NCBI RefSeq assembly: GCF_003918875.1
Contig: NW_025767056.1
Coordinates: 62,001-126,000 of the forward strand
Direction of reading: 5' to 3'
DNA length: 64,000 bases
From: Haliotis rubra
Taxonomy: Eukaryota
Position numbers and translations under genes: made by a program. Position 1 is the first letter of the stretch. Each line of letters begins with the position of its first letter. This document shows, piece after piece, positions 5,925 to 22,597 of the stretch. Below the pieces are notes generated by a model that was not told the DNA's origin, searched no databases, and saw nothing but the letters and a program-made list of their open reading frames with translations.

Positions 5925-8900
5925 TGAGTGAGTGAGTGAGTTATTATTTAACGTCACATCGGCAATATTTCAGCCATATCGTGACGAGAACATTTGACAG
6001 GGTAATAGAATATATATAGTTATTATAAAAACCTGCCGACGAAGGACAGTAAAAATAATAGATAATCACAGATATGAATATAAAACTAGCGAACAAAGCT
6101 AAAATATTCCAATTAAAGAAGACAATACAATGTAAAAATGGGCTATAGATCGCAAACAACTGAAGGTAGATCACCATACTAAGGCCCAAGGGGGCTTACA
6201 TTACTTTTGCTACCTGCATGGACCCTAGCTGGATTTACACCATCCCTTCAGCCATTGGCGTTTATACTGAGATTTAGCCATACATTAAAATGACAAAAAA
6301 TACTACGATTAAAAACCTGGTAGACTGAAATTTACTTGAAATGTTTTTGGGACTTACGTACCCTCTCAGGAGGACAATAATTTTACGCTACGTCAACCCC
6401 TTTGAGGGCACAGCCACTAACAATCTAAGTTAACAATCTAAACTACCAATCATTAAAAATACATCTACTTACAGAGCATATTAATCAAAATCAGTGATCA
6501 AATCAATTTCTTTTAAAAACCAAGAATTAAATGAACATGAACAGTGTTAAAAGATCCTTAACAGTTTTAACATTAAAATATTTATCCCTTATGATGGAGA
6601 ATTCGACACAGTCAAGCAGGAGATGCTTGACTGTGACTTTCATCACAAAGGGATACAAAACTGGAGGATCTTCACCTTTCAACAAGTAGTTGTGAGTATA
6701 CCTTGTATGGCCAATGCGACATCGTCATAATGACCTCTTCAAATCTGGACTGACAACCCAAGTGAGTGTAACCAATATAAGGTTTTATTTCATGTAGTTT
6801 TTATTAATACCTACTTGAGTGTCCACTTCTTCTGCATCAGATCACGGATGTAAGATCTAATGCAAGCTTTGTAATCAGAGTATGGGAGCAGAAGTGGTGT
6901 CACAGATTTGTTGAGTGCTGCCTTAGCAGCAATATCAGCCATCGTGTTCCCAGAAATGCCAACATGGCTGGGTAACCAACAAAAGACGATGTCGCATTGG
7001 CCAGTAGCAAGCTCATTATACAATTCAATAATTTCTAATAAAAGTGGATGTTTGCAAGAAATATTTTTATAGCCTGAAGACACGAAGAGAATCTGAGAAA
7101 AGATGATATATTGTTTATATTTACGGTGTTTATTAATATATTTAAGAGCTGTTAGTATTGCGTTTGCTTCTGCTGTGAAAATTGAACTGTCATTGGGTAG
7201 TCTGGAAGATATTGTTTTGGACCCAATGACAGTGGCACAAGCAACCGCGCCACCATCCTTGGATCCATCTGTATATAAGGATTTATATGTATTATATTTA
7301 TTTCTTAATTGACTAAATTCCTGTTTATACTGTAAATCATTAGTTTCTGATTTTTTAAATGTGGTTAATGTTAAGTCAACGTCTGGCCTCACCAATTGCC
7401 AAGGAGGAGAAGAAAGAAGACGAGAAGGAGATATATTCTCCAGCTCAATGCCGGCAGCAGAAAGGAATGGTTAATTCTGTGCCCAAGAGGCGGAACAAAG
7501 AGAAGGTTTTTTTGTTGTATAAATCCTCATAGAGGGATTAAAGACACAGTTAAATGCAGGATTAGACTCGTTAGAATAGAGTTTTGTTATATACTGTAAA
7601 GATAGTTTGATACGACGTTGGGTAAGGGATGGCTCATCAGCCTCAACATAGAGACTATCAATAGGAGAGGTTCTAAAAGACCCAAGACAAAGTCTAAGGC
7701 CTTGATGGTGGACAGAATCAAGTAGTTTAAGGTTGCTTTTGCAGGCTCCACCATAAACGATGGAAGCATAATCAAGTTTGGAACGTACCAGTGATCGATA
7801 TAGATGTAGGAGGGGTAGCTTGATCCCCCCCACTTAAGTGGAAACGACTTTCAACAAGTCAAGTGCCTTCAGGCATTTAGTTTTAAGTGCTTTAATATGT
7901 GGTAGAAACGTTAAGTGTGAGTCAAAATAATACCCAAGAACTTGGCCTCTTTCATAACTTTGATGGGTGTGCCATTTAGAAATAGTTCCGGGTCCTTATG
8001 CGGTTTGTATTTACGGCAGAAATGTATACAATTAGTTTTGGATTTAGAAAATTTAAAGCCATTTTCGAGACACCATTTATCTATCTTGTTTAAACACAAC
8101 TGCAGTTGCCGTTCAATAGTATGCATATTTTTACCGCGACAAGAAATATTAAATCATCCACAATGATCCATCTATTGAATCATTTAAAACCTTGGATAAA
8201 CTGTTTATCTTAATGCTAAACAGTGTGACAGACAAAATACTGCCTTGAGGGACACCCTGATCCTGATTATAATGGTCAGACAGGGTTGAGCCCCTCGGAC
8301 TTGAAATTGTCTATCATTTAAAAAGTTGGATATAAATTGAGGCAAACGGCCCGTAATCCAAAATCATGTAAATCTCTCAAAATACCATATTTCCACGTAG
8401 TATCGTATGCTTTTCTAGATCGAAAAAGATCGACACTGCATGTTGTTTATTAATTATGGCATTTTAACAAAAGATTCCAAACACTAAATGATCAATTGTA
8501 CTTCTGTTTTTACGGAAACCACATTGTATATCAGTTAATAGGTTATTGGTTTCCAAGTACCAAACTAATCGATTATTGATCATGCGTTCCATGGTTTTGC
8601 AAACGCAGCTAGTGAGTGAAATTGGTCGATCATTTGACGGATCAGTATGATCACGTCCAGGTTTTGGAATTGGAACTATTATTGCATCACGCCATGAAGG
8701 AAATTCACCGGACGTCAAATACTATCAAAGATATGTAGAAGTGTCTCTAAACAGGATTCCGGTAAGTGCTTCAGAAGTTGATAATGTATGTTATCAGCTC
8801 CTGCAGCAGTATCGTGAACTTAGTCCAAGAGCTTTATAAAGCTCATGAATAGAGAATAATTCATTATAGTCTTCCCCATTATCCGTGTTGAAATTAATAG

Positions 8901-9817
8901 GTTTCGTTTCTTGTTGCTGTTGATATTTTTGAAATTTAGGTACATAGTTGGAGGAAGAAGAGGGCTTAATAAAGTTTCACCTAGTTTATTTGCAATATCT
9001 GAAGTATCTGTTAATAATTCATTTCCAATTGTAAGGTGGTGAATGCCAGTTTTAGAGCCTTTACCTTTGATTTTTTGTACCATATTCCATACCTTGGACA
9101 TGGGTGTACGTGAATTGATGTTTGAGACATAATTTTGCCAAGATCGACGTTTACTTTGTTTAAAAGTACGCCTAGCTTTGGCATTTAAGATCTTAAATTT
9201 ATTGAGATTATGGACCATAGGATGGCGACGGAAATAGTGTTCAGCTTTTTTCCGTGCCTTCCTTGCTTGTTTGCAGTTGTCATCAAACCATGGTTTTCGT
9301 ATGTGAGCAACAGCAGAGGACTTAGGACTTCCTACTGATACACAAGTCCCATCTAAACAGTAGCTTCGTCTGAAGTTGTGACCCAAAACCCCAACGAACA
9401 AAAGGCTTCTTTGCAATACACAGGAACCTTGGATTTTAAGTTCATGGTTCAACAGAGACAACTCCTTAAACCACATGTTGGTGTTTATTATGCTGTAGCA
9501 TACTTCAAATACCTGAAAGAATATGCTGAGGGGTTTAGGGATCGTGTCACACTGTTCTGTGTAGACGACAAGCACAAAGTGAAAGATGAAGAGTCAGGAT
9601 GTCCTGTTGCTGCTGTAGATAGAGGACGGCAGTGATGGTTGGATTAAATGAACATTTCAAGTGGCAGATCATGACTTTACCAAGTTGTCAGAGGACTTAG
9701 GAATACATTCATCAGCAATGATATTGAGTTCATCAGAAAAACATTTTACGGGATCAAGAGTGCCCATGAAAAGTTCAGGTTTCAATTTGCTAATGCAAAG
9801 CGTTTCAAACAAACAAT
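5925..9817 (-). mobile_element. I-clade (Nimb-like) non-LTR retrotransposon, 5'-truncated, RT plus RNase H, frameshifted
   Basis: Motifs RKPWFDDNC, WRDAIIVPIPKPGRD...RPISLTSCVCKTMERMINNRL, QCGFRKNRSTIDHL, GVPQGSILS, FSKSKTNC, LVRSKLDYAS and RNase H YTDGSK...IFTAEA...WLPSHVGISGN. 3' hairpin and (CACT)n tail at ~5925. Confidence 0.9.
9328..9688 (+). mobile_element. 361-bp insert encoding a Zator-like DDE transposase fragment, flanked by a 14-bp direct repeat
   Basis: Translates to KFMVQQRQL...YFKYLKEY...CVDDKHKVK...PVAAVDRGRQ(V)MVGLNEHFQVADHDFTK. CAGAGGACTTAGGA is duplicated at 9314-9327 and 9689-9702. The Zator assignment comes from the recalled DDK...DHDF motif. Confidence 0.55.
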
Positions 9818-10464
9818 GTACTTGTCTTAGAAAGAGAACTGTACATGAACCGCAAAATTGTGATAAGAGAATGACAATTACTTTCAGAAATGTCACAGGC
9901 TTAAAACAAAACAGAGTTATCTCACTTATACAATTATACACACACTATACCATTGAAGAGTTATCTCCCTTACATCAGTGTGCCAAGCAATGCACCAAAG
10001 TTCAAATCCTGGTACTTTTAAAATAATACATACAATGTGAAATTAATGATTGAGTCGGGCAAGGATTTACATGGATTCCTGTATTTGAGGGTCCCTGGGA
10101 CTCAAACTCTTAATTTTCAGGGGTCATGGACAACAAAATGGGGGTCCCAGACACTTAAATATTACCATTGCTACTGTTATTGTATTGTGTATCATGATCA
10201 TCAAATAGTTACAGTAATTAAATTGCAAATAATACCATAACCTAGCCATTTTTAGCAAACTCCGTGATAACGTATTGTAAAGTATTTAGACTTTTCCTGA
10301 GTCCCTGTGGACGCGCAAATATATTTTGTAGCGTCCATTGTCATACTTTATGCGTATAGGACGCAGGAATTCGCGTCCTGTAACTCCCAATGACATGGAA
10401 AATTCATTTCTCAATACAACTTGCCTACTCATCCTGGTGGTGCCATACTCCTCCTCTGGATTTC

Positions 10465-11098
10465 TTCATGAAAAAATCTTAAGTTTTAAATTATGAAATT
10501 GCTTAGCTAAGATTTTAGATAAGACTGGATCATGAAACTGTCGGAGCAAACTCTTAGCTAAGACTAAAACAGCTGCCATGGCAATTTTAGAATCATCTAA
10601 TCATGTTCGGTCACACTTTATTAATTGAGCAGAAGTTTACTAGAAAGCACCTACTCAGACATTCCAAGCAAGTCAATTGAAGCTTTTATCCCTGTCGCGG
10701 GAATTTTAGTGGTTTTACGGTATGGGAGGAACTCAACAGAAGTTACGTATTAGCAGTTTGTTTGTCAACTCAAACAGGTGCTGGAATATCGTCTGACTGA
10801 GTCACTCAGCTGTCAGTATGACGGAGAAAAGCTCAGACACCGAAGAGAAGATCCAACTGCACCCCTCAATAGGAGACGATACTCATCGAAGAGGTGACCA
10901 AGAGGGAGAGTCTCCTCTTCGGAAAGCTGGACGGGGTCAGTCGGACAAGAACAACATCACAACAAGAAAAAAATCAGTGCATGGGAAGACGTTGCAGCGA
11001 TTGTGAACTCGTAAGTTGAGATTAATTTGCTTGGATAAATATATACATTCTATCACAAATTAATAGCTAAAATACATGGAATTATCATGAAACGGCCC
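10465..11098 (+). mobile_element. Harbinger-derived non-autonomous element with Myb/SANT exon remnant (10818-11010)
   Basis: Frameshifted PKRRSNCTPQ*ETILIEEVTKRESLLFGKL...KKSAWEDVAAIVNS followed by GTAAG donor. Right end CATGAAACGGCCC is Harbinger-type. Left boundary is approximate. Confidence 0.65.
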
Positions 11099-12750
11099 TC
11101 CTGTTATCAGAAATTTGCTGGCCGCCGAAAATGATATTGGACTCAACCTTAACGACGGGCCACTATCAGTTCTGTTGTCAAGTGACGTCATAGTTCGACA
11201 TTCGAGTGGCTTTCGACTGGCAGATATTCTGGGTCAAACAAGTCAAAGCTAACCCAAATTCCCGTTGTGTTTGACATGGTTTAATTGTTCGACGACGTCA
11301 TCGCGGTCAATTACTTCATTGTTTCCTTTTCTTTTCAACACAAATTGTGGGCTTTCTTGTCTGGCAGTTAATGGTCCTAACCTCAACAACTGAAAAAACA
11401 AAATGTTTCTACTGATGAATTTTAAATGCACTATACTATAAAAGTTTTTGTTTTTTCTTTGACTGTTGATGGACTGGAATATTTTAAGATCCGTTTACTA
11501 AATTCATTTCCAAAGACGTATATACACAGGATTGGAAGCCTCCACTGACAGTCTCGCTCTGATGTGGGTCGCGCTCATTTGCCGCAACAGGGGTGTCTGC
11601 GCGCTGTGCATCGTGGGTAATTCGCTAACGCTGGACACCGGAAAGGATAGCATCATATGTGGGATTATGTCAGATAAATGCGGCATTTAGATAGCATTTC
11701 ATGAATCAAAGGTAAGAATTATCATTACTTAGAACATAAACGAAAGCCACCGGCATCTGTTTTCAAAGGATTAACTATTATTTTTGGCAAAGAATCCTTT
11801 TGAACTGCTGGCCAGTCGTCACTTGTGGCGCTGACTTCGAAACCAATATGGTTGACACGCTCAGTTTGCAAAATTGTACATTATGTCCTATTTGTGCGTC
11901 AATTTACGTTGCAGGGGGTGCAGGAAGTCCTTAGTTACTTTGGTCAGATAATGGAACCATTTATTCTCTATGTACTTACGATGTTGTAAATGGTTAAATA
12001 TATTTTTTATTTATAGATTTTCACTCGCGATTGTCATGATATTTGTGTCAAATAGAAATATTCAGTGGCATCGTCCATATCCATTGTGATTTTTTTGTCA
12101 CAATTTCCAAATCATGCACTGAACCATATTTTCCAGACAAAATGAATTTTAAAATTTCAATTTATGTTTGTTGTATTCATGAAGAATTTTATTAGTTTCA
12201 CGTCAATTTCGCCCTCAAAACATGCAATTAAAAATGTTAAATTTTATCTGATCACTATTCACCTATGTACATGATGTATCACCATCAGTAGTCCTGATAT
12301 TTTCGTTTTTTTTTATCGGAAATATTTGATTGTCTTATTTTGATAAAATGATAGAATACATGTCTATTTAACCCAAAGTAATGAAGATTTTTAGAAAACA
12401 TATATTACAAATATGTATATTGCAATATTTGTTTTGGTCTGTCATGGTCTATAGCATACTACTTGTCGAGTTGGTAGGAATCTTTATTTCCACATGTTTT
12501 CAAGATAATGCATGTCATATATGATAAAAATGTATATTGATATGGTCTATTTATATTAAATGCATTGAACCACAATGAATTTTCTGAATGATATAATTTC
12601 AAAGTCTCTGTATCAATAATTTATCTTACTTTTTGGTGTATATTGCCATATACTCTGTGCTATGTATTGAGCTCATAAGAGCTCATGCAGGTGTTTGTAA
12701 GTAATATATTTTTGTGTTTATCATTGTTCATTATGTCTGTTGTATCTTAG

Positions 12751-15700
12751 ATGCCTCAAACTCCTCGGCCTGTGTCCAAGAGAAAGGCAATAGGCCGTAG
12801 AAAGAAAAGGCGGCACAGTTATGAACATTATGATGAAGAGAAGCAAGTTGAACATGTTGCTGCAGACCACTCCTACTCATTTCCTATGTGAGTAGCCACA
12901 AACATTTGAGATTTGTTATATTTTCTTGTTCTTTTAAAATATTTCTTGAATACACAGTACTGTTTTATACAAAAAATACTTATAAATATTTCCACACTTT
13001 TACACCAGACTTTAGACAAACTTTAATATGCCAACTATATGGGCAAATGAATACCACCATTCAATCTCCACTCAAACAACTCCACCCCCCTTTCTGACAT
13101 CTCTCCCACCCTCGCCTCTCCATATGTTTACCATGTGTCAATATGAGACAGCTACTTGCTAGATCACAATGACATGTAACAAACAGTTCTGTCATGGTGT
13201 TGTAAAGTCATCTCCATCCATATTATATGTGTGTTATTATTTTTAAAGCTGATGTTGGTTTTCTCCCTGAAGTGTTTCAATGAGTGATAATATATCCATT
13301 TCTATTCATTGACATATATTCTTAATTACATAATATTTGTAAAACAAATATTATTTGTATGTGATGTCATTGTAATTTATTGCACTTTTCAGAAAAGACT
13401 GCAGTGAGAGTGCCGGATGGGAAACTGCATGGGATAATTTCTATCTAAAAGACAGCAATCCATCACCTTCCACACCCCTTTACAGTGAAGTGACAGATTC
13501 TGACAACTGTTCTGCCAATGCGTTTTATGTTGTTCTCCACAAAGTATTCCAGTATAATGCTGAAGATGAACTGGATGTGGTTGTTTGCAGACTGTTGACT
13601 GAGAGGACATATGCAAGATATCTTTCCCTTATGGATGAAGTTAAGCAAGACCTATCAGCCTTTGGACACTTACTGTTTTCTGGTGCCAATAAACATGGTT
13701 TGAGATTTGTTCAACCATATGATCATGAACCTAGCCAGGCCATGAGACTGAATTTGATCATCAATCAGTCATTGAAACCAACTTTATTTGTCCATGGCAA
13801 GGAAGTAAATACTAATCATGATTTTTGGACTGGTCTTCCACATATATATCATTCTGTGAAAGACATCCAGAAGTTACAGTCCAAACTGGAGCGATGGGAC
13901 ATTTGCATGGGAAACTTTGAGGCTCAGTATGTATCCATGGTGCCCTCAGGTGTTGGAATTTACAAGAGTTCAGGTTGTGTCTCTGCTGTTGCCTACCGGG
14001 AAGATATCCATGCTATCAGAGGTGACATTCCATACGAGTCAACAATACGTTCAACTAATTGCTGTCTACTGGTTCAATCAAAGAGGAGGTGCAAACACTG
14101 TGATCTGTACAGAAATACTCTGCGGAAGAAGGATTCACGTCAAAAAGGCCCACACTGTGTCAACATTTTCTCTGAAGAAAACACCCCACAGTACTATGAA
14201 CAGAATTCATCTGGTTAAAAAAATTAATATGCTAAAACATGAGAAGAGATCAATTCAAGCAGAACTTGACCGACTTAAAAGACGGGTGCTTGATGTCATC
14301 AAAACAAAAGGACATGTGTTGAGCTACAGTGAAAACGAAGAACTCTTACAACTTGTGGAACAATACACAAGTGATGTCTTGAGAAGTTATCCAGACGAAA
14401 CTTCCACTCAAAGGCTCTTCTGGGACCAGCAGCTAAAGTATGCAAAACTCAAAAAAACAAATCCGCAATGAGGTGGCACCCTATGATGGTAAAGTGGTGT
14501 TTGTATTTACGTAGCAAAAGTCAGAAAGCTTACAATGTGGCCAGAGATTCTGGATTTATTGCTCTTCCAAGTACCCGTACCTTATTTGACTATTCACATG
14601 TCTTGCCGAGTACATGTGGCTTTCATGAAAGATTTACTGAACATCTGATTGAACAGGCTGAAAAATGTGGAATGTACAAGGAAGAATGGAAATCCTATGT
14701 TGGGATCCTCCAAGATGAAATTAAAGTATCAGAAGGACTGGTTTATGACAAGAAAAGCGGCGAGTTAGTCGGATATGTAGAGCTGGACAAAACCGGGAAT
14801 GACATCAGTAATATGGAAAATCTGCTTATTGACAGTGATCCCAAACTTGCAAAATCCATTCTGGTTGTTATGGTGAGAGGCATCACTACATCTTTGAAGT
14901 ATCCATTTTTCTGTCTGGCTACTGATGGAATAACTTCAGCGACTTTATACCCTCCAATATGGGAAACTGTGAGAATACTAACGATTGAATGCGGGTTGAA
15001 GCCATTGTTTATTACATGTGATGGGGCAACACCTAACAGGAAATTCTTCAAACTACATCGTGATGAAAATTTGCAGAATACTTTTTGGACTTTAAACCCA
15101 TATTCGTTTCCCACCAGGAAACTGTATTTCATATCTGATGTCCCACACTTATTGAAAACAACAAGAAACTGTTTCTCAAATTCTGGAGCACATAATTTGG
15201 CACGAAATCTTTGGAAAAGTGGGAAATGCATTTCATGGACTCATATTATTCGTTTGTATGAAGATCATGTTGAAACACCATTATTTACCCTATGTCCCAA
15301 ATTAACCAGACATCATGTACATTTATCATCATTTGCAAAGATGAAAGTAAACCTAGCTGCACAAGTACTCAGCAAAACAGTTGCAGATGCTTTGGAAGAA
15401 CTTTATGGGGACCATGTGACAGAAACTGTGAAATTTATTCGCCATATGAATCGTTTCTTCGACTGTCTTAACACTAGACATTTAGAGGAGGCAAAACGCA
15501 AGAGGAACCCAGACCTAGAACCATATAGGACACAAGATGACTCGAGATTTCACTATCTGACTGATGAGTTTCTACAATATTTCAATGACTGGGAAGTGGC
15601 AGTAATGAACAGGGCAGGACAATATACTCTACGTCAGCGAACAAATATGAAGCTGAGTCAACAGACATTGAATGGTCTCCATATCAGTGTGAACTCCATT

Positions 15701-15975
15701 GTAGAATGCACTAAGTTTCTTTTGCATGAAGGAGCAAGTTTTGTTTTGACCCACAGATTTAATCAAGATCCCCTTGAAGAACATTTCGCTCATTATAGAC
15801 ATAAAGGTGGATCGAACGACAATCCAACAGTTTTTTGATGTCCGGAACACTCTTTCTGAACTCAGAGTAATTGGATCTCAAGCACTTGCTCCTATTCGGG
15901 GGAAACGTTTCCAAGAAAAGACAACAGGGATCACTTGCTGTGGACAATACGCCACTAGCAAAGAGGATGAGATAA
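12751..15975 (+). CDS. P-element/THAP9-type transposase (spliced; frameshifts at homopolymers); no THAP domain seen
   Basis: Exon from 12751 (MPQTPRPVSKRKAIGRRKKRR...DHSY, GTGAGT donor), then exon from ~13393. Motifs RWHPMMVKWCLYL, LPSTRTL, ILQDEIKV (D1), ITCDGA (D2), SDVPHLLKTTRN, KMKVNLAAQVLS and NQDPLEEHF (E). Frameshifts near 14145 (A5), 14455 (A7), 15835 (T6) and 15900 (G5). Confidence 0.88.
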
Positions 15976-16039
15976 TCAAGTGACATCCTATTTCATGATC
16001 ATGAATGAAAACTTTGAAAGGCTCAGCTTCAAGGCGAGA

Positions 16040-18340
16040 CAGTATGTTTTAAGTGTGACAGATACATAATTCTACTATTCCCCTACATATCTCCAGAGAA
16101 TTCACCAATCTGTGAAGGCTGTGACAATGATGGTATCTCAACACTGGACTATTACAGTAACAGAGTGAAATCAGACTATCCAGAGGAACATGTCTTCCTA
16201 CGTGGTGATCTGAATGCCAGTATGAAGGACTTTCTAAAGTACATTTCTGATGACATTGTTGAATATGTGTAGTGTGCAGAGTACTACCCCACTGTGTTTG
16301 ACAGTCCTAGGAACATGAACGGCATAATAACTATGGCAATGAATTTGCTGAACTGTGGCGTACATTCAGAGTACATAGGGTATGGCAGAGTACTTAATGA
16401 CCAGTGAATTCACTTTACATGTGTCACACATAATGGTGCAACATGTTGGCATCCTCATCAATTTCCATGTATTAGGATACTTTGGTATTTGTACATTTGA
16501 TTTTTCATGTAACTTTCCATAAACATGATTATATTTTCACTAGAGATTTCTTGTAAACAATGTAGATAGCCATATGCCAGGTAACCATGGTAACAGCTGT
16601 AATGACCATAAGGATATGAAATGAAATATTTTGTAAATTTGTGTGGTTAAATGATTATGGAAATACCTTGTACAGGCAGATGTATTGCAGGTATTCTAGC
16701 ATTGATGAGTCTGTATCTTTATTTGTAAAGTTGCTACATGATGCGGCAACTCATACTGTGGGTGTACATCCACCATGGTTTACAGATAATTGCAGCCAAA
16801 ATTATAGGTCTTGCAGCTCACAGAGATCATTATCAATGTCTGTATATATAGAGAGAGTTTTGAGGAATATTTAATAATAATAATAATAATGTGTCATAGC
16901 GCTAACAATCAAGGCCATTATTACCCCGGATAACCCAAGCTGCCTGTTAGGCACTAGAAGGTTATAGTCATATGACTTTTTTCCACCGGGTACCCATTTT
17001 CCTGCTGGGTGAACAGAGGCAATTTTGAACAAACTCACTTTCCTAAGGTGAGACCACATGTATGACATGTGCTTCGTTGTGGGGCAGGACTAGTCCTAGA
17101 AACTCTCAGGAGTCAAGCTGCCAAACACGGTCACCCATCCAAGATCTCTCCGAGCTCGACGCTGCTTAACTTCACCGATTTGTGACCTGAGCTTTAAGCA
17201 CAGGACAACGCGCCACCAGTGAAATTGTAAAAACAATCCCAAAAATTATAGAGGCATTTTACTTATAGATTCCAGCTATGAATAATATTTATTCACTCAT
17301 TTTAGCTGATGATGCCTCAGCCATATCTCATACTTGTGTTCAGCTACAAAGAAAGTTTACAGTGCTTGAATTTTTTTGTGAAACAAATGGTATGAATGTG
17401 AATTTAATGAAAACTAAAGTTGTTGTTTATAGAATTTACTTCTTTGAAGTCTTGTGAAAAATGGTTTAATGATTGGAACTCTATTAATTTGGTATCTTTA
17501 TATGAATACTTTTGTCTTGTGTTTACCCCAAAGGTAATATGGAGCAAAGCTCAAACATGTTTAGTATCCCAGGCCAATAAGGCATTATTTTCTGTCAATA
17601 ATTTTCAAAGGAAATTAGTTAATTTCAATTGTGTAGAAAAATGGTTAAGATATTTGATTGTATGACCTGTACCATGCTATGGATAAAAATGAGACTCTTC
17701 TGACTTAAATACCATTGAATCTGTCCACATTTAATTTTGTACAAATGCATTTAATGTTGGAAAATGTACTTGTAAAAATATTGTTTTAAATTTAGGTGAA
17801 TCTGGAAGACTACCTTTGCAAGACTACTTTTGAGAAGATAAAAAAAATGTTCTATTTCAATATGGATTTGGCTTTGTTTGGATATAAATGTACTATGCTA
17901 TCCAAAAAGCTACAGTTAATGATTTTTTAAGCAAAAATTGTTTGATAACTTATTTCAGTCCCAGTATTCTCTACAGTCAAAACATAAAATATTTTATTGC
18001 AGTGATTTTAATTCTATTTTAAATGTTGTACATTTAGATTAGAAAACTGGTAGATGTGAAAATGTCATTTTTGAAGAGAGGTATTGCAAATCATGTGAAT
18101 ACTAGGGTATGTTTCTATTGGATGATGAATGTATTTTATATTTGTAAAACATATTCGGTGTACATGAAGAAATATTGTAGTATTGATCACATCATTATTA
18201 ATTTTGCTGGAATAGTAAACAGTGATGTAATAAGAGATGTATGGCAATTTTTTTACCATGTAAATAAGACAAGAAAAACGTAAATGCACATTGTATACAT
18301 AATTGTGATGAAGTTTATATTTTGGGCTGGAGCTCTGTTA
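16040..18340 (+). mobile_element. Heavily degraded L2/CR1-group LINE fragments inside the P element
   Basis: Endonuclease-like ...VFLRGDLNA near 16195, RT-like LILADD near 17300, MNVNLMKTKVVVYR and GESGRLPL. Same group as 62690-63990. Interrupted by the SINE at 16871-17217. Confidence 0.6.
16871..17217 (-). mobile_element. SINE with tRNA-like/5S-rRNA-derived head and Deu/Nin-like core, (TTA)n tail
   Basis: Minus strand reads GGTGGCGCGTTGTCCTGTGCTTAAAGC (tRNA A-box-like), then GAAGTTAAGCAGCGTCGAGCTCGGAGAGATCTTGGATGGGTGACCG (5S internal control region), then CTCTGTTCACCCAGCAGGAAAATGGGTACC (Deu/Nin-like), then GCGCTATGACACATTATTATTA. Confidence 0.75.
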
Positions 18341-18583
18341 CTGAAATAAACCATGAGTCAGTCTTTCTGTCTGTCTGTCTGTCTGTCATACTGATGATCG
18401 GAAACAGTGAACTGAGATACTTGCCATTGCCACATATAATGTGCACTGACCTTGCAAGGTTGAGTAGGAACAAATGGATTTACATCTCTGACATTTATTT
18501 TTTTTAATGATAAAATCAGGGGACACAATTCACCTAATAATACCAAATCCCAGATTATATTATAAAATATCATATTTATCAGG

Positions 18584-20278
18584 TTAATCATTGTAAGGTC
18601 TCAATCGTTTTCTCAGAGACTGGGATTTTTTTTCCTTTGAAAACTGATTTGGCGTTTTCCTTCTGCGTTTGTCTTTGCACACGTTTTGCAGTGGCCCTTC
18701 CACGGAGTCTTAGGAATAGATCTACAATGTTCTCTAAGATTGATGTTTTTAATTTATCCTCAGAGTCAGTTAGCTTGTCCCAGTAGTAAGAAACTGTGAT
18801 ATCTTGCAAGATTGTCTCTTTCAGTGCTGTCTTTGAATCATTGTTGTGATAATATAAATTAGATGCCTGCCTGCATATTGCCTCTATCTTTCGGACAAGA
18901 AAGAAAAAGTTATCACCACAGACTTTCAGTCCACCACGGTTCACCTTCAGAGTCCACTTTTTTTATCTTCGTAACAAAATCAGGAGACTTCTCAGTGGAT
19001 GAGGCACAAAGGTTTTTCATAATTAATGCAGAGGCTGTATTTCCTTTCTTTTTTGATTTTTTTTCCATAGCATAAATCAAGTATCCCGATATGTAGAAGA
19101 GCACAGAGTTGTCTTGGTGTGTAAATGATTCTGCAGACTTCTCTGTGTCCATCTGCAGACTTATAGTAAAATTGTTAACAGCGCATCTGAGGAGGTCGTC
19201 CAGCAGACACTGACTAAACAGGTGGACATGCATTTCTGTCTCTCTGGAAGCTCTCATGATCACGGATCTTAAGCTGGCGCAAAATTCAAAGTTTGTCCTC
19301 ATTGCATGGAATTTCCTAAACATTAATTCCTTGTCTGATGAGAAAGAGCTTGTCTTTCCAAAAAACGGCCAATGTGTCCAGTAATGGTGGCTTGATTAAT
19401 GTTTCGAGATGTTGCATTGTGACAGGTGAAGAAATCACTGCTTTGCCAATCTCAACCATGATACCTCCAGATTTTGATGTGATCGAATTGTGGTTTGGGT
19501 TGTTGCACACTTCGGAGACAGCAGACTCAAGCAGTTGTGCAAATGAGTTGTCAGTAAAGGTTGTTATGCTGCTTGATGTGTTGGTGATACCCTTGTCACA
19601 GACAGGTACAGCAGTAATATCACCAGCTTTCTGTGTGTCTGACACCTTGTGCTGACTGACTGGATTAAAATAATTGTATATTAATATTGCTTTTCTCCAT
19701 CTGCTTATTGAAAACATATGTACAGATAACAGTAGGATACTTGTGATTATTACTATTATTATTATTATTATTATTATGTTTACAGATTAACATCAAATGC
19801 AGCAGAGTGGGTCCGGTGCCTTATTATTATTATTTTTATTAAGCATTACCTCTAAACACTTTCAATTAACCATGATAAGGGCTCAAAACAAAAGAATATA
19901 TTCCTTGAATATGCTGTGGTCTTAATTATTTGCATCAACAAGACTGCATTTATGTCTGACCATCACATATATGGAAATATTCACTATATTAGTACTCTCA
20001 CCTATTACATCGTATCGTTTGTGTTTGTTGACGACGTGACCCCTGAACCCTGACACGGACAAATACTGTTTGGGGCACAGAGGACACTGGTAGCATGTCT
20101 TCTTTACGGAAGGTGTGTCAGTGTGTTTTGTCTTGGTTTTGGGCTTTGGTCGTTCGGTAGAGTTATCTTCGTCCTCAGACCATGAATCCGAACTGAAGTC
20201 TAATTCGTACTCTGTCCATTCACCCAACATTGCCGATAAATCGACATCGGATTCGTCCCAATACAGATAATCTGACAT
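18584..20278 (-). CDS. Second gene of the P element: acidic N-terminus, C2H2 zinc finger and THAP9/P-transposase C-terminal-domain-like region
   Basis: Exon 1 20278-20002 (MSDYLYWDESD...YQCPLCPKQYLSVSGFRGHVVNKH, GTGAG donor) splices in phase to exon 2 at 19659 (TTTTAATCCAG acceptor). C-terminus NSVLFYISGYLIY...NRGGLKVCGDNFFFLVRKIEAICR...ENIVDLFLRLRGRATAK...SLRKRL. About three frameshifts, two in T-runs. Confidence 0.8.
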
Positions 20279-22597
20279 CGTGTTTGTTTGTATTTGGGTA
20301 GATATATAGCGATCGCAGTTGGTATATCACATAGATGAGTAAATCATCACTGCAAGTATAGAACATGTGACATGCACATACACATGACGTATCGCGTCGA
20401 GAAAATTTCTGACAGCTGCGTTATCCGGATGTTTTGGTAACTACGGAAAGCAATGCGCAAGCGCAAGATGGTCAAAGGTTAACCAATCGCGAGTCGCGGC
20501 CGGGGAACGTTATCACTCGCTATCAATGAACACGGTCAGCTTACGCGGCGCACATCGCCTAAGGCTTCCAATCCTGTGTATATACGTCTTTGGTTCCTCA
20601 GCCTGCATCCATGCTTAAAGGAGAATACTAGACAATTGTAATAATTTGCTGGGTGAAAGATAAATTCATCAGAAACATGTAGAGCGGTGTTGGGTATTAC
20701 CGAACAAAATTCCATTTCCGCATTGTTTTCTCAAGTTGCCGATCGTGAGAGCAAATTTGATGCGCATGCCTTGAAAGAGAAACTTCCTCTTCCGGAAGAA
20801 CGATCGTCTGCTCCTTAAATATACTTCAAAGGACTTAGAGAAGAAAATTGACGAAAAGACAAGAAACAGGATTTTACATCCTTAAACGTGGTGCGTATAT
20901 CGGCGATGAGAGGGTTAAGCCAACAAGTCTTAGTCAAAACTGGGATACCCCATTCTGAATATAGCACCATGTCTATTTTAGTACATTACGCAGTTCAAAA
21001 CCATAACGTTAGGCTTTGTTAGCCATATATAGACTGTACCGTCCGATCAACACTAACCCTTCACTGTGTAGCCCTGTCGTCCTTTACCGAACAAGCGTCA
21101 TTGGCCTCAGCAATTTTTGCTATGAGAATGACCATTTGTGTCGCTTATTTGTGGATAATAAAACAAACAGTACTAATTCATCCATATGGTATATGAACCG
21201 TCAAAACAAACACAAAACAAGATAATTATGCCTGTCTCCATTCACTATTTATAGGTGTTAGAATTTACCTTGTCCTGTGTACTTCACGCATATGTTGCTT
21301 TCAAAGCAATATATCGACAACTAAACAATACATTCACATCCTGATGTACACACGGGTAGTGCCTACATGTTCGATCGTGCTATAAATAAATAATCGCTAA
21401 CTTTGGAAACGTGTCGTGTTCTCCTGAAAATAACGATGATTGTTTCATCAACTGATCAAGGAATGTGTGTTATTGTCCAAGCAATCGCGTTCTCCCAAGC
21501 CATATATTAATAACTGAGACTATAACTCCAAACATTAGTCCGGGGAACAACTTACTTTTACATCAGGAACGTGTTTGTTGAGGCATGTCGATAAATGATT
21601 GAAATATTCGACCGTGACCTTACAGGAATGTCAAGGGCGGTTAATTTCCCGACTTCGTTGAGAGTGGTTTCCCTTAGACTGTGCTCCACTACTGACTGAC
21701 GGGCACCTTGCACGTTATTTGCTTTTATTTATATCGGTTCCAGGCATTATCGACCGATACTTAAAGTAAAAGCTAACATCAAATGGTATTTAAGACTTTC
21801 AAATGACTTAAACTTCAGCAGTGTTTAATTATATTCACCCTTGTCTATTTTGAAATACGTAATTCCATTACTTTTCGTGGCCAGTTAATTCTTCCACAAA
21901 ATACGTCAACATATCATAAAAAAAACATACACATTACTCATGTATTTAAAGTAAGGCTTCCAGTATTTTTTTCGGCATTCACATCTTCCGTATGCCTCAT
22001 TTTTGTATTCGTGAAATAATAGAAAGTTCACCGAAGCAGTGGGAATTAATGCCCTGATGTGATCGAGTCTCTTTGCACACAAAACAGTTAAGTTTTCTCA
22101 ATAATATACATTCACTGAAATAATGTTTCAATGAGAAAGCGACCAGACATATATCAAATCAATAAGAATTAAGATTATTAAATAGAGATAAGTGATTTAT
22201 ATTTGAAAATTTCACATGAAACACGTAAAACATCCCCGATGATCTGATATAGATACACACCGGAACACATTTGTAATGCGAATGTACAGACACTGTTCAA
22301 GAACACCTGTTTTATTCCTGGCAGTTATATGATTTACAAGTGAAAATAAGAACTGCCTTTTGAACAAAACATCAATCAAGTGATACTGTTAATATTTAAT
22401 ACAACACTCTTTTTCATCAGTAATGACAGTAATTACTTTTCATAAAGTAAGAACACACTTTAAATGCTATGAATGATCAATATTTCATATGTAGATTAAA
22501 TACAAGTTTATAATTGGTATGCCGTGACATGTATGTCTATTTACTGTCCTGCAATCTGCCTGTCCATCGTTCTAGATTTATGTCAAAATTGCAGACG

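Follow-up and report, generated by a model that had tools for sequence, protein, structure and literature searches.

We examined a 64,000-nucleotide stretch of the blacklip abalone, Haliotis rubra (contig NW_025767056.1, positions 62,001 to 126,000; hereafter the window), and found that positions 11511-20592 are occupied by a 9.08-kb transposon of the P superfamily, which is bounded by perfect 31-bp terminal inverted repeats (TIRs) and contains two convergent genes. Gene 1, on the + strand, encodes a predicted P-type transposase that ends shortly after its catalytic core, and gene 2, on the - strand, encodes a C2H2-finger protein whose C-terminal half is homologous to the C-terminal domain (CTD) of the P transposase. 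The same pair, in the same orientation, was recovered from other molluscs and from other phyla, and these two-gene convergent P elements appear to be a widespread clade that had gone unremarked in the literature searched. We consider it rather probable that the gene-2 protein acts in trans as the CTD subunit of the gene-1 transposase.

Gene 1 was assigned on the basis of three Pfam modules, all above their cut-offs (TNP-like_RNaseH_N, E-value 2.4e-18; TNP-like_GBD, 1.3e-21; TNP-like_RNaseH_C, 3e-6), and of its similarity to the Drosophila P transposase in the Protein Data Bank (PDB; chain 6p5a_A, E 1.5e-14), which agrees with the P-type catalytic core recognised in an earlier reading made without database searches (the sequence-only reading). 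The Asp of CDGA and the Glu of QDPLEE aligned with the Drosophila catalytic residues (SDLG and QDIVE, respectively), and the first Asp (LQDEIK) fell inside the RNaseH_N match and outside the printed 6p5a_A alignment. From these matches, gene 1 is predicted to be a P-type transposase with an RNase H domain and a GTP-binding insertion domain. The main exon (13393-15975, + strand) was delimited by Pfam, 6p5a_A, homologues, tblastn, mapping of the NCBI protein P0001, copy comparison and reads, and encodes this transposase with a short basic tail. In homologues of 780-793 aa, an N-terminal domain of ~180 aa with conserved cysteines is followed by a coiled coil, and the equivalent region of the window is 13393-14450. 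A heptad-like stretch (KINMLKHEKRSIQAELDRLKRRV) and an MRWHP... region are present in gene 1, judging by sequence alone, and are candidates for the coiled-coil dimerisation region and the helix-turn-helix domain that precede RNase H in P transposases; PF12017 is on record only for a distant gene-1 homologue (P0064).

We found that gene 1 stops 50-60 aa after the catalytic Glu, as the sequence-only reading had proposed. All nine homologues that were read (from molluscs and elsewhere) also end 50-60 aa past this residue, with the tail '...ALAP.RGN....ID..P..KR.R*' and no CTD. The same tail, again with no CTD, closes the uninterrupted 864-codon open reading frame (ORF) of the Haliotis cracherodii locus L008, which corresponds to a 909-aa NCBI model. 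The conserved stop and tail thus speak against splicing of gene 1 to a downstream CTD exon, and the convergent orientation rules out its splicing in cis to gene 2. In particular, neither gene 1 nor any homologue read had the CTD as part of the transposase polypeptide. The CTD of the Drosophila P transposase is joined by a flexible, disordered linker (PMC7776569). The 6p5a_A alignment stops at chain residue 548, gene 1 continues for ~50 residues and the Drosophila CTD starts at residue 617; therefore gene 1 ends inside the equivalent of the linker.

Gene 2 probably consists of two exons. Exon 1 (20002-20278, - strand), identified from its ORF, a zf-C2H2_4 match and homologous exons, encodes a conserved acidic N-terminal motif (MSDYLYWDESDVDLSAMLGEWTEYE) and one C2H2 finger. 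The zf-C2H2_4 match (E 2.8e-4) was under the Pfam cut-off, and the homologous exons of two related loci (L001 and L002) exceeded the zf-C2H2_6 cut-off. Exon 2 (18584-19659, - strand; from ORFs, tblastn, reads and 6p5a_B matches) encodes an all-helical domain. Its C-terminal half contains the motifs VLFYISGY, W..K.NRGGLK....FF.LVR..E and LFLRLRG, followed by a basic tail, and resembles the P CTD in this series (YISGY...NRGGL...LFLRLRG and basic tail). The acidic N-terminus, the single finger and the FYISGYL, NRGGL, FFLVRKIE and IVDLFLRLRG stretches had all been picked out beforehand, and the ORFs and the zf-C2H2_4 match bear them out. When read-supported lengths were used together with the intron at 20001-19660, gene 2 was an intact ORF of 449 aa, and this protein could be aligned over its full length to P0136, an NCBI model from H. 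cracherodii (40% identity, E 8e-108).

The relationship between gene 2 and the P CTD was examined with an AlphaFold model of P0136 made from 60 diverse family members, which had a mean predicted local distance difference test score (pLDDT) of 79.5 and values >90 over the helical domain. Residues 299-456 of P0136 aligned by VIA-align with the CTD of the Drosophila P transposase (617-734), which is deposited as its own chain, 6p5a_B, in the PDB entry (Z 11.5, root-mean-square deviation 2.3 Å, 118 out of 118 residues). This chain ranked first among 980 chains, and the next chain had a Z of 7.3. Foldseek against PDB returned 6p5a_B as the sole high-probability match (probability 0.92, template modelling score 0.65 by target). 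The 60-sequence family profile, searched against all PDB sequences, also gave one match at E<=10, again 6p5a_B (E 0.0046), in which the YI[AS]GY and RGGL.kPs..F motifs were aligned in order: the profile segment 'LfYIsGYiihalk' was aligned with 'MEYIAGYVIKKLR', and 'WtekvdRGGLkkPsddf...elE' with 'YVDEVSHGGLIKPSEKF...ELE'. In addition, the clusters of the AlphaFold database (AFDB) included a protein named 'Transposable element P transposase', whose C-terminal 300 aa were matched (E 4.7e-5), and precomputed Pfam THAP9_C matches are on record for several gene-2 family members, one of them at E<=1e-5. Since structure and sequence point to one domain through the same motifs, we accept the homology, and consider it established from the structure model and the sequence profile together that the C-terminal half of gene 2 is homologous to the P transposase CTD. 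The proposal that the element encodes its CTD on a separate gene is thereby upheld, and the structural likeness that it called for extends over the entire Drosophila domain.

Several other searches did not recover this match. Single-sequence searches with the gene-2 pieces of the window (Pfam at E<=10, PDB sequences and ESM Atlas) gave nothing useful. A first AlphaFold model built from 9 sequences had a pLDDT of 62 and no fold match, and the 9-sequence profile did not recover 6p5a, which appeared only with the 60-sequence alignment. Foldseek against the Swiss-Prot AlphaFold models returned just meaningless whole-chain helical matches and recovered neither THAP9 nor the P transposase; we attributed this miss to the low sensitivity of a global search when the query has 480 aa and is partly disordered. 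Finally, the N-terminal helical half of gene 2 and its acidic motif matched nothing known in the structure and sequence searches.

The CTD of the Drosophila enzyme is all-helical. In the strand-transfer complex it packs against the second subunit and touches both the transposon and the target DNA, with its basic tail pointing towards the latter (PMC7776569). A domain that already acts across subunits on a floppy tether lends itself naturally to being supplied as a protein of its own. We infer a division of labour in which gene 1 would supply the catalytic part (coiled coil, helix-turn-helix-like region, RNase H domain interrupted by the GTP-binding insertion domain, and a basic tail similar to a nuclear-localisation signal). 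The gene-2 protein (~450 aa) would join the gene-1 dimer in trans and provide the DNA contacts of the CTD. The C2H2 finger and the acidic motif might add end recognition or docking, and transposition would then need both proteins.

Homologues of gene 1 and gene 2 were convergent (tail to tail) in 8 out of 8 lineages examined: H. rubra (two copies), L001, L002, L004, B. belcheri (L005), Tegillarca granosa (L006), Ptychodera flava (L007) and H. cracherodii (L008). The transposases of L001 and L002 were 52% identical to H. rubra gene 1, and that of L004 was 42% identical, with its two genes ~490 bp apart. L005 and L006 were reached from the gene-2 side. In L008 the genes were 680 bp apart and both were annotated by NCBI. 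Both ends could be defined in three elements (the second H. rubra copy, L003, together with L004 and L008), and each of these enclosed both genes. In particular, the L004 element was ~5.3 kb long, with a perfect 31-bp TIR starting CATAGTCATAAG and the target-site duplication (TSD) TTGCCAC, and the L008 element was 7.3 kb long, with a TIR of ~31 bp with two mismatches starting CACGGAC and the TSD ATACCAA. Thus, gene 2 is carried, in convergent orientation, by L003 and by seven further lineages, which answers the concern raised in the sequence-only reading that other copies might lack it.

This conservation bears on the possibility that gene 1 alone is sufficient, its ancestor having lost the CTD, and that gene 2 is a passenger kept for something apart from the chemistry of transposition, for instance silencing evasion, chromatin targeting or nuclear import. 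Gene 1 does retain all catalytic modules and its own basic tail, and the N-terminal half and acidic motif of gene 2, which resemble nothing known, would suit a protein with such an unrelated task. However, a passenger would hold by coincidence exactly the domain that is absent from the transposase, and the pair has kept a constant orientation across four phyla; we therefore find this explanation improbable.

The locus pairs that were closest in gene 1 were also the closest in gene 2 (Spearman 0.51). Over the same pairs, gene-2 identity was 23-48%, as opposed to 42-74% for the transposase. This faster divergence fits the main rival of a trans-acting CTD subunit, namely that gene 2 is a dedicated regulator which occupies the element ends, or competes for CTD docking, and so limits or times transposition like truncated P repressors. 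Such a role would also suit a protein with a DNA-binding-type finger and no catalytic domain, whose promoter must be at the opposite end of the element, permitting independent control. However, every gene 1 read in the clade lacks the CTD, and a pure inhibitor would leave the function of this domain unreplaced; furthermore, gene 2 stays intact in very recently transposed copies, and the CTD makes many contacts with donor and target DNA in the active Drosophila complex (PMC7776569). We consider a purely regulatory role unlikely on balance, and continue to favour a CTD subunit supplied in trans.

The gene-2 family was further explored by searching its profile against 1.84 billion representative proteins, which gave 1158 clusters at E<=1e-3 and 409 clusters at E<=1e-10. 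The best 150 of the 1158 clusters were all stand-alone proteins of 100-480 aa, none of them of transposase length. Full-length members (440-480 aa) had the acidic motif, one C2H2 finger and the helical domain, and were encoded by a single ORF in several species. The acidic motif was kept across phyla, and members were found in molluscs (Haliotis, Patella, Mytilus, Pecten and Tegillarca), an annelid (Owenia), a hemichordate (Ptychodera) and a cephalochordate (Branchiostoma). All the named members were annotated as uncharacterized or as 'C2H2-type domain-containing protein'.

As a separate observation, the helical domain of gene 2 (P0136 model against AFDB clusters) also matched proteins annotated as 'ATP-dependent DNA helicase' (PIF1-like) from mussels and corals, with E from 1e-5 to 4e-4. 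These matches fell in internal or C-terminal parts of the proteins, and may come from wrongly fused gene models or from another class of mobile element with the same domain.

The element is sharply delimited in H. rubra. A repeat finder reported perfect 32-nt inverted arms (11510-11541 and 20562-20593), and the true ends (11511 and 20592, CAAAG...CTTTG) were set by the points at which identity with L003 stops, giving a TIR of 31 bp; the ends proposed beforehand were the same. The left TIR (CAAAGACGTATATACACAGGATTGGAAGCCT; 11511-11541, + strand) is a perfect inverted repeat with its boundary taken from the L003 comparison, and the right TIR (20562-20592, - strand) was supported by inverted-repeat detection, motif count and the same comparison. 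The TIR sequence occurred 2 times in the window, against 0 expected by chance.

L003 lies on H. rubra contig QXJH01000853.1 and was reached via the NCBI protein LOC124262759, which is 100% identical to a 456-aa ORF of the window (14468-15838). Window positions 11511-20594 aligned with L003:7328-16393 at 99.6% identity, and no similarity was detected in the flanks. Since the flanks are unrelated and the identity is confined to the 9.08-kb unit, L003 is a separate insertion of that unit, and it is flanked by a perfect 7-bp TSD (GTCCATA). The two copies (11511-20592 and 7328-16392) differed by 3 substitutions and 24 indels, nearly all of the latter in homopolymer lengths. With two copies and 3 substitutions per 9.08 kb, the H. 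rubra element has been recently mobile as a whole unit. This second copy lies within a gene model on the opposite strand for an ionotropic glutamate receptor (Lig_chan and Lig_chan-Glu_bd; L003:1-21776), and is presumably located in an intron of that gene. Taken together, the 31-bp TIR and the 7-bp TSDs of L003 (GTCCATA), L004 (TTGCCAC) and L008 (ATACCAA) are as expected for the P superfamily. The element is thus a P-superfamily member by its catalytic core, TIRs and TSD, and departs from it in the THAP domain and in the transposase-borne CTD.

The coding frames of both genes are interrupted in the window, and these interruptions had previously been read as introns. In the main body of gene 1 the frame changes at 14451-2, 15831 and 15898, and in gene 2 at 18626, 18958 and 19360, in all cases inside homopolymer runs. 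P0001 maps to the window if 2, 1 and 1 bases are skipped in A7, T6 and G5 runs, and L003 has shorter runs at these gene-1 positions. We also compared the window with short-read contigs from two H. rubra samples and one sister species, and these contigs omit one letter, at full depth, at 15831, 15898, 18626, 18958 and 19360. The homopolymers, the L003 differences and the short reads thus rule out introns at the main-body changes of gene 1 and at those of gene 2. The apparent splicing inside both genes is largely an assembly artefact. More generally, the H. rubra assembly contains frequent homopolymer-length errors that break ORFs, with at least 5 of the 24 inter-copy indel sites contradicted by short reads; therefore frameshift calls elsewhere in this genome are affected.

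The description of the element as two convergent spliced genes accordingly stands for the convergence, and is reduced to one likely intron in each gene. In gene 1, a 5' intron (12888-13392) is probably real, given its splice signals and the NCBI models of H. cracherodii. It is preceded by an inferred 5' coding exon (12751-12887, + strand), which begins with ATG, has a polypyrimidine-AG acceptor before it and a GTGAGT donor after it, and is in frame with the main exon across the intron. In gene 2, the intron at 19660-20001 (- strand; GT-AG, phase 1) contains (TAA)n microsatellites and allows a gap-free spliced alignment to P0136; its splice signals and the H. cracherodii gene model suggest that it is probably real. 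One RNA-library contig from the sister species crosses the acceptor of this intron unspliced.

A number of findings weigh against a functional two-component transposase with a CTD in gene 2. In the single RNA library (sister species), the 5' half of gene 2 was covered only by unspliced contigs at low depth, and the 3' half of gene 1 by none at all; the gene-2 contigs could be explained by DNA contamination or read-through transcription. On the side of the homology, a direct hmmscan against a local Pfam did not reproduce the THAP9_C matches and gave just sub-threshold matches to Tnp_P_element_C (E 0.0035-0.12), the profile match to 6p5a_B (E 0.0046) is modest, the modelled protein P0136 is 40% identical to the H. 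rubra gene-2 protein, and the makers of VIA-align warn that helical folds with Z < ~13 can reflect a common arrangement. The two genes are also 8.5 kb apart in P. flava (L007). A frame break in gene 1 at ~14146-14178 is common to both H. rubra assembly copies and lies outside the read-covered stretch; both copies may therefore rely on a transposase from other copies. Finally, the window copy lacks a TSD (TCATTTC at 11504-11510 on the left and GTTCCTC at 20593-20599 on the right). Its right flank is a very high-copy sequence, and flank searches gave no explanation for the absent TSD; recombination between copies, an aberrant (hybrid-end) insertion of P type or a mis-join are possible.

The missing TSD and the high-copy right flank, together with an assembly rich in homopolymer errors and nested repeats between the genes, would be compatible with a two-gene appearance that is an artefact, either of a rearranged or chimeric locus (two nested elements, or a single-gene P element whose 3' part has been inverted) or of assembly error. 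However, L003 carries the same 9.08 kb at another locus with a perfect TSD, and the compact relatives L004 (~5.3 kb) and L008 (7.3 kb), with their TIRs and TSDs, hold the same two genes, so that we give an artefact hardly any weight. We rejected the specific case in which gene 2 would be the 3' end of a single-gene element in inverted orientation, as gene 2 has its own start codon, finger and stop, and forms single ORFs of 440-480 aa in other species.

We next consider the N-terminal THAP domain. No THAP was detected in the Haliotis element by Pfam on the + ORFs of 11541-14218, by tblastn with the THAP exons of L004 or by a C2CH pattern search, as the sequence-only reading had supposed. In L004, two small THAP exons were found upstream of the transposase ORF (L004:9234-9718, Pfam E 1.8e-6, with a '...VIPTLNLP' ending), and the CTD-less clade is therefore not uniformly THAP-less: some two-gene P elements have retained THAP, and others have lost or replaced it. 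The inferred 5' exon of H. rubra gene 1 encodes a basic stretch followed by DHSY, and resembles the first exon of the 909-aa NCBI model of L008. This resembles the HCF-1-binding motif that follows the THAP domain in THAP proteins, and the exon may be a remnant of a THAP-type N-terminus. The 5' region before it (11542-12750, + strand) has no assigned coding sequence, and none of its + frames contains a Pfam domain. The promoter may be located here, and perhaps also an unrecognised first exon, since a consensus splice acceptor is found at 12749-12750.

The spacer between the genes (15976-18583, no strand assigned; defined from an RVT_1 fragment, word depth and copy comparison) comprises ~2.6 kb of nested repeats in H. 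rubra, and only ~490-680 bp in L004 and L008. A weak RVT_1 match was found at 17278-17457 (E 0.0085), and degenerate fragments resembling non-long-terminal-repeat (non-LTR) retrotransposons extend over 16641-17665 (+ strand), just downstream of gene 1. L003 has the identical spacer layout; as the non-LTR-like fragments are common to both H. rubra copies, the element transposed after gaining them. A repeat at ~16900-17300 had a word depth of ~1.5 million in the H. rubra short-read contigs, compared to ~1000 for the rest of the element. This repeat was also abundant in the RNA library, with many internal joints and variants, and probably represents a family similar to short interspersed nuclear elements; Rfam gave no match in the high-copy repeat (16700-17400 searched). 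Finally, (TAA)n/(ATT)n microsatellites occur in the gene-2 intron (19738-19850) and in the spacer (16866-16890), where they explain most internal inverted-repeat pairs, and one of them differs by a 3-bp unit between the copies.

We compared the Haliotis element with known systems. It shares with the Drosophila P element and vertebrate THAP9 the 31-bp TIRs and an all-helical CTD with YI[AS]GY, GGL.kPs and a basic tail. In contrast to both, its CTD is encoded by a second, convergent gene, where it is joined to a C2H2 finger, to an acidic motif and to an extra helical half-domain, and its transposase stops in the linker-equivalent region and has no detectable THAP. The TSD is 7 bp here and 8 bp in the Drosophila P element. 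The P-superfamily elements Galileo and 1360 resemble it in having a P-type transposase and a TSD of 7 bp. Galileo is placed in the P superfamily (PMC4168063), and Galileo and 1360 have been described as single-gene elements with an N-terminal THAP, the TIRs of Galileo being very long (PMC3688188), whereas the Haliotis element has two genes, no detectable THAP and 31-bp TIRs.

PIF/Harbinger elements, with their transposase and separate Myb-like DNA-binding protein, are similar in being cut-and-paste transposons that encode a catalytic protein and a DNA-binding partner; the analogy is a functional one. PIF/Harbinger transposition needs both proteins. The layout with two ORFs has been described (PMC5543537). 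These elements belong to another transposase superfamily, and their partner protein does not derive from the transposase fold, whereas gene 2 carries a domain that belongs to the transposase polypeptide in canonical members of the family. ProtoRAG, the Transib-derived amphioxus transposon related to RAG1-RAG2, also has two convergent genes within its TIRs, encoding a catalytic and an accessory subunit. The proteins are unrelated to those of the Haliotis element, and RAG2 is not known to be homologous to any domain of the single-gene Transib transposases.

All the described P/THAP9 members that we found in the literature are single-polypeptide enzymes, and no description of a two-gene, split or accessory-protein P element was found there, Repbase and Dfam being outside the scope of this search. 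The suggestion that the CTD had 'moved' to a separate gene assumes fission rather than fusion. We tentatively raise, as a possibility that falls short of being probable, that these elements form a large, multi-phylum P-superfamily clade of natural two-component transposases, with the CTD as a free subunit that has its own C2H2 finger, and that this is maybe the ancestral state. If the two-gene state is ancestral, the canonical single-chain P/THAP9 proteins may have arisen by gene fusion.

The P element is a textbook example of a transposon and a mainstay of Drosophila genetics, and its human relative, THAP9, is poorly understood. A conserved clade with the CTD on its own gene indicates that this domain forms a module of its own and could be supplied in trans, in keeping with the flexible linker that precedes it and with its placement next to the second subunit in the cryo-electron microscopy structure. 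It also means that P-type elements are able to evolve layouts with an accessory protein, as seen in Harbinger or RAG1/RAG2. Furthermore, invertebrate proteins labelled 'uncharacterized' or 'C2H2-type domain-containing', in more than 1000 clusters, can now be annotated as transposon partner proteins. The halves of such a natural split transposase can be expressed separately, so that the role of the CTD becomes directly testable. If the two-component reading is true, the P CTD works in trans, and these elements would offer a ready-made split system for dissecting or controlling P-type transposition.

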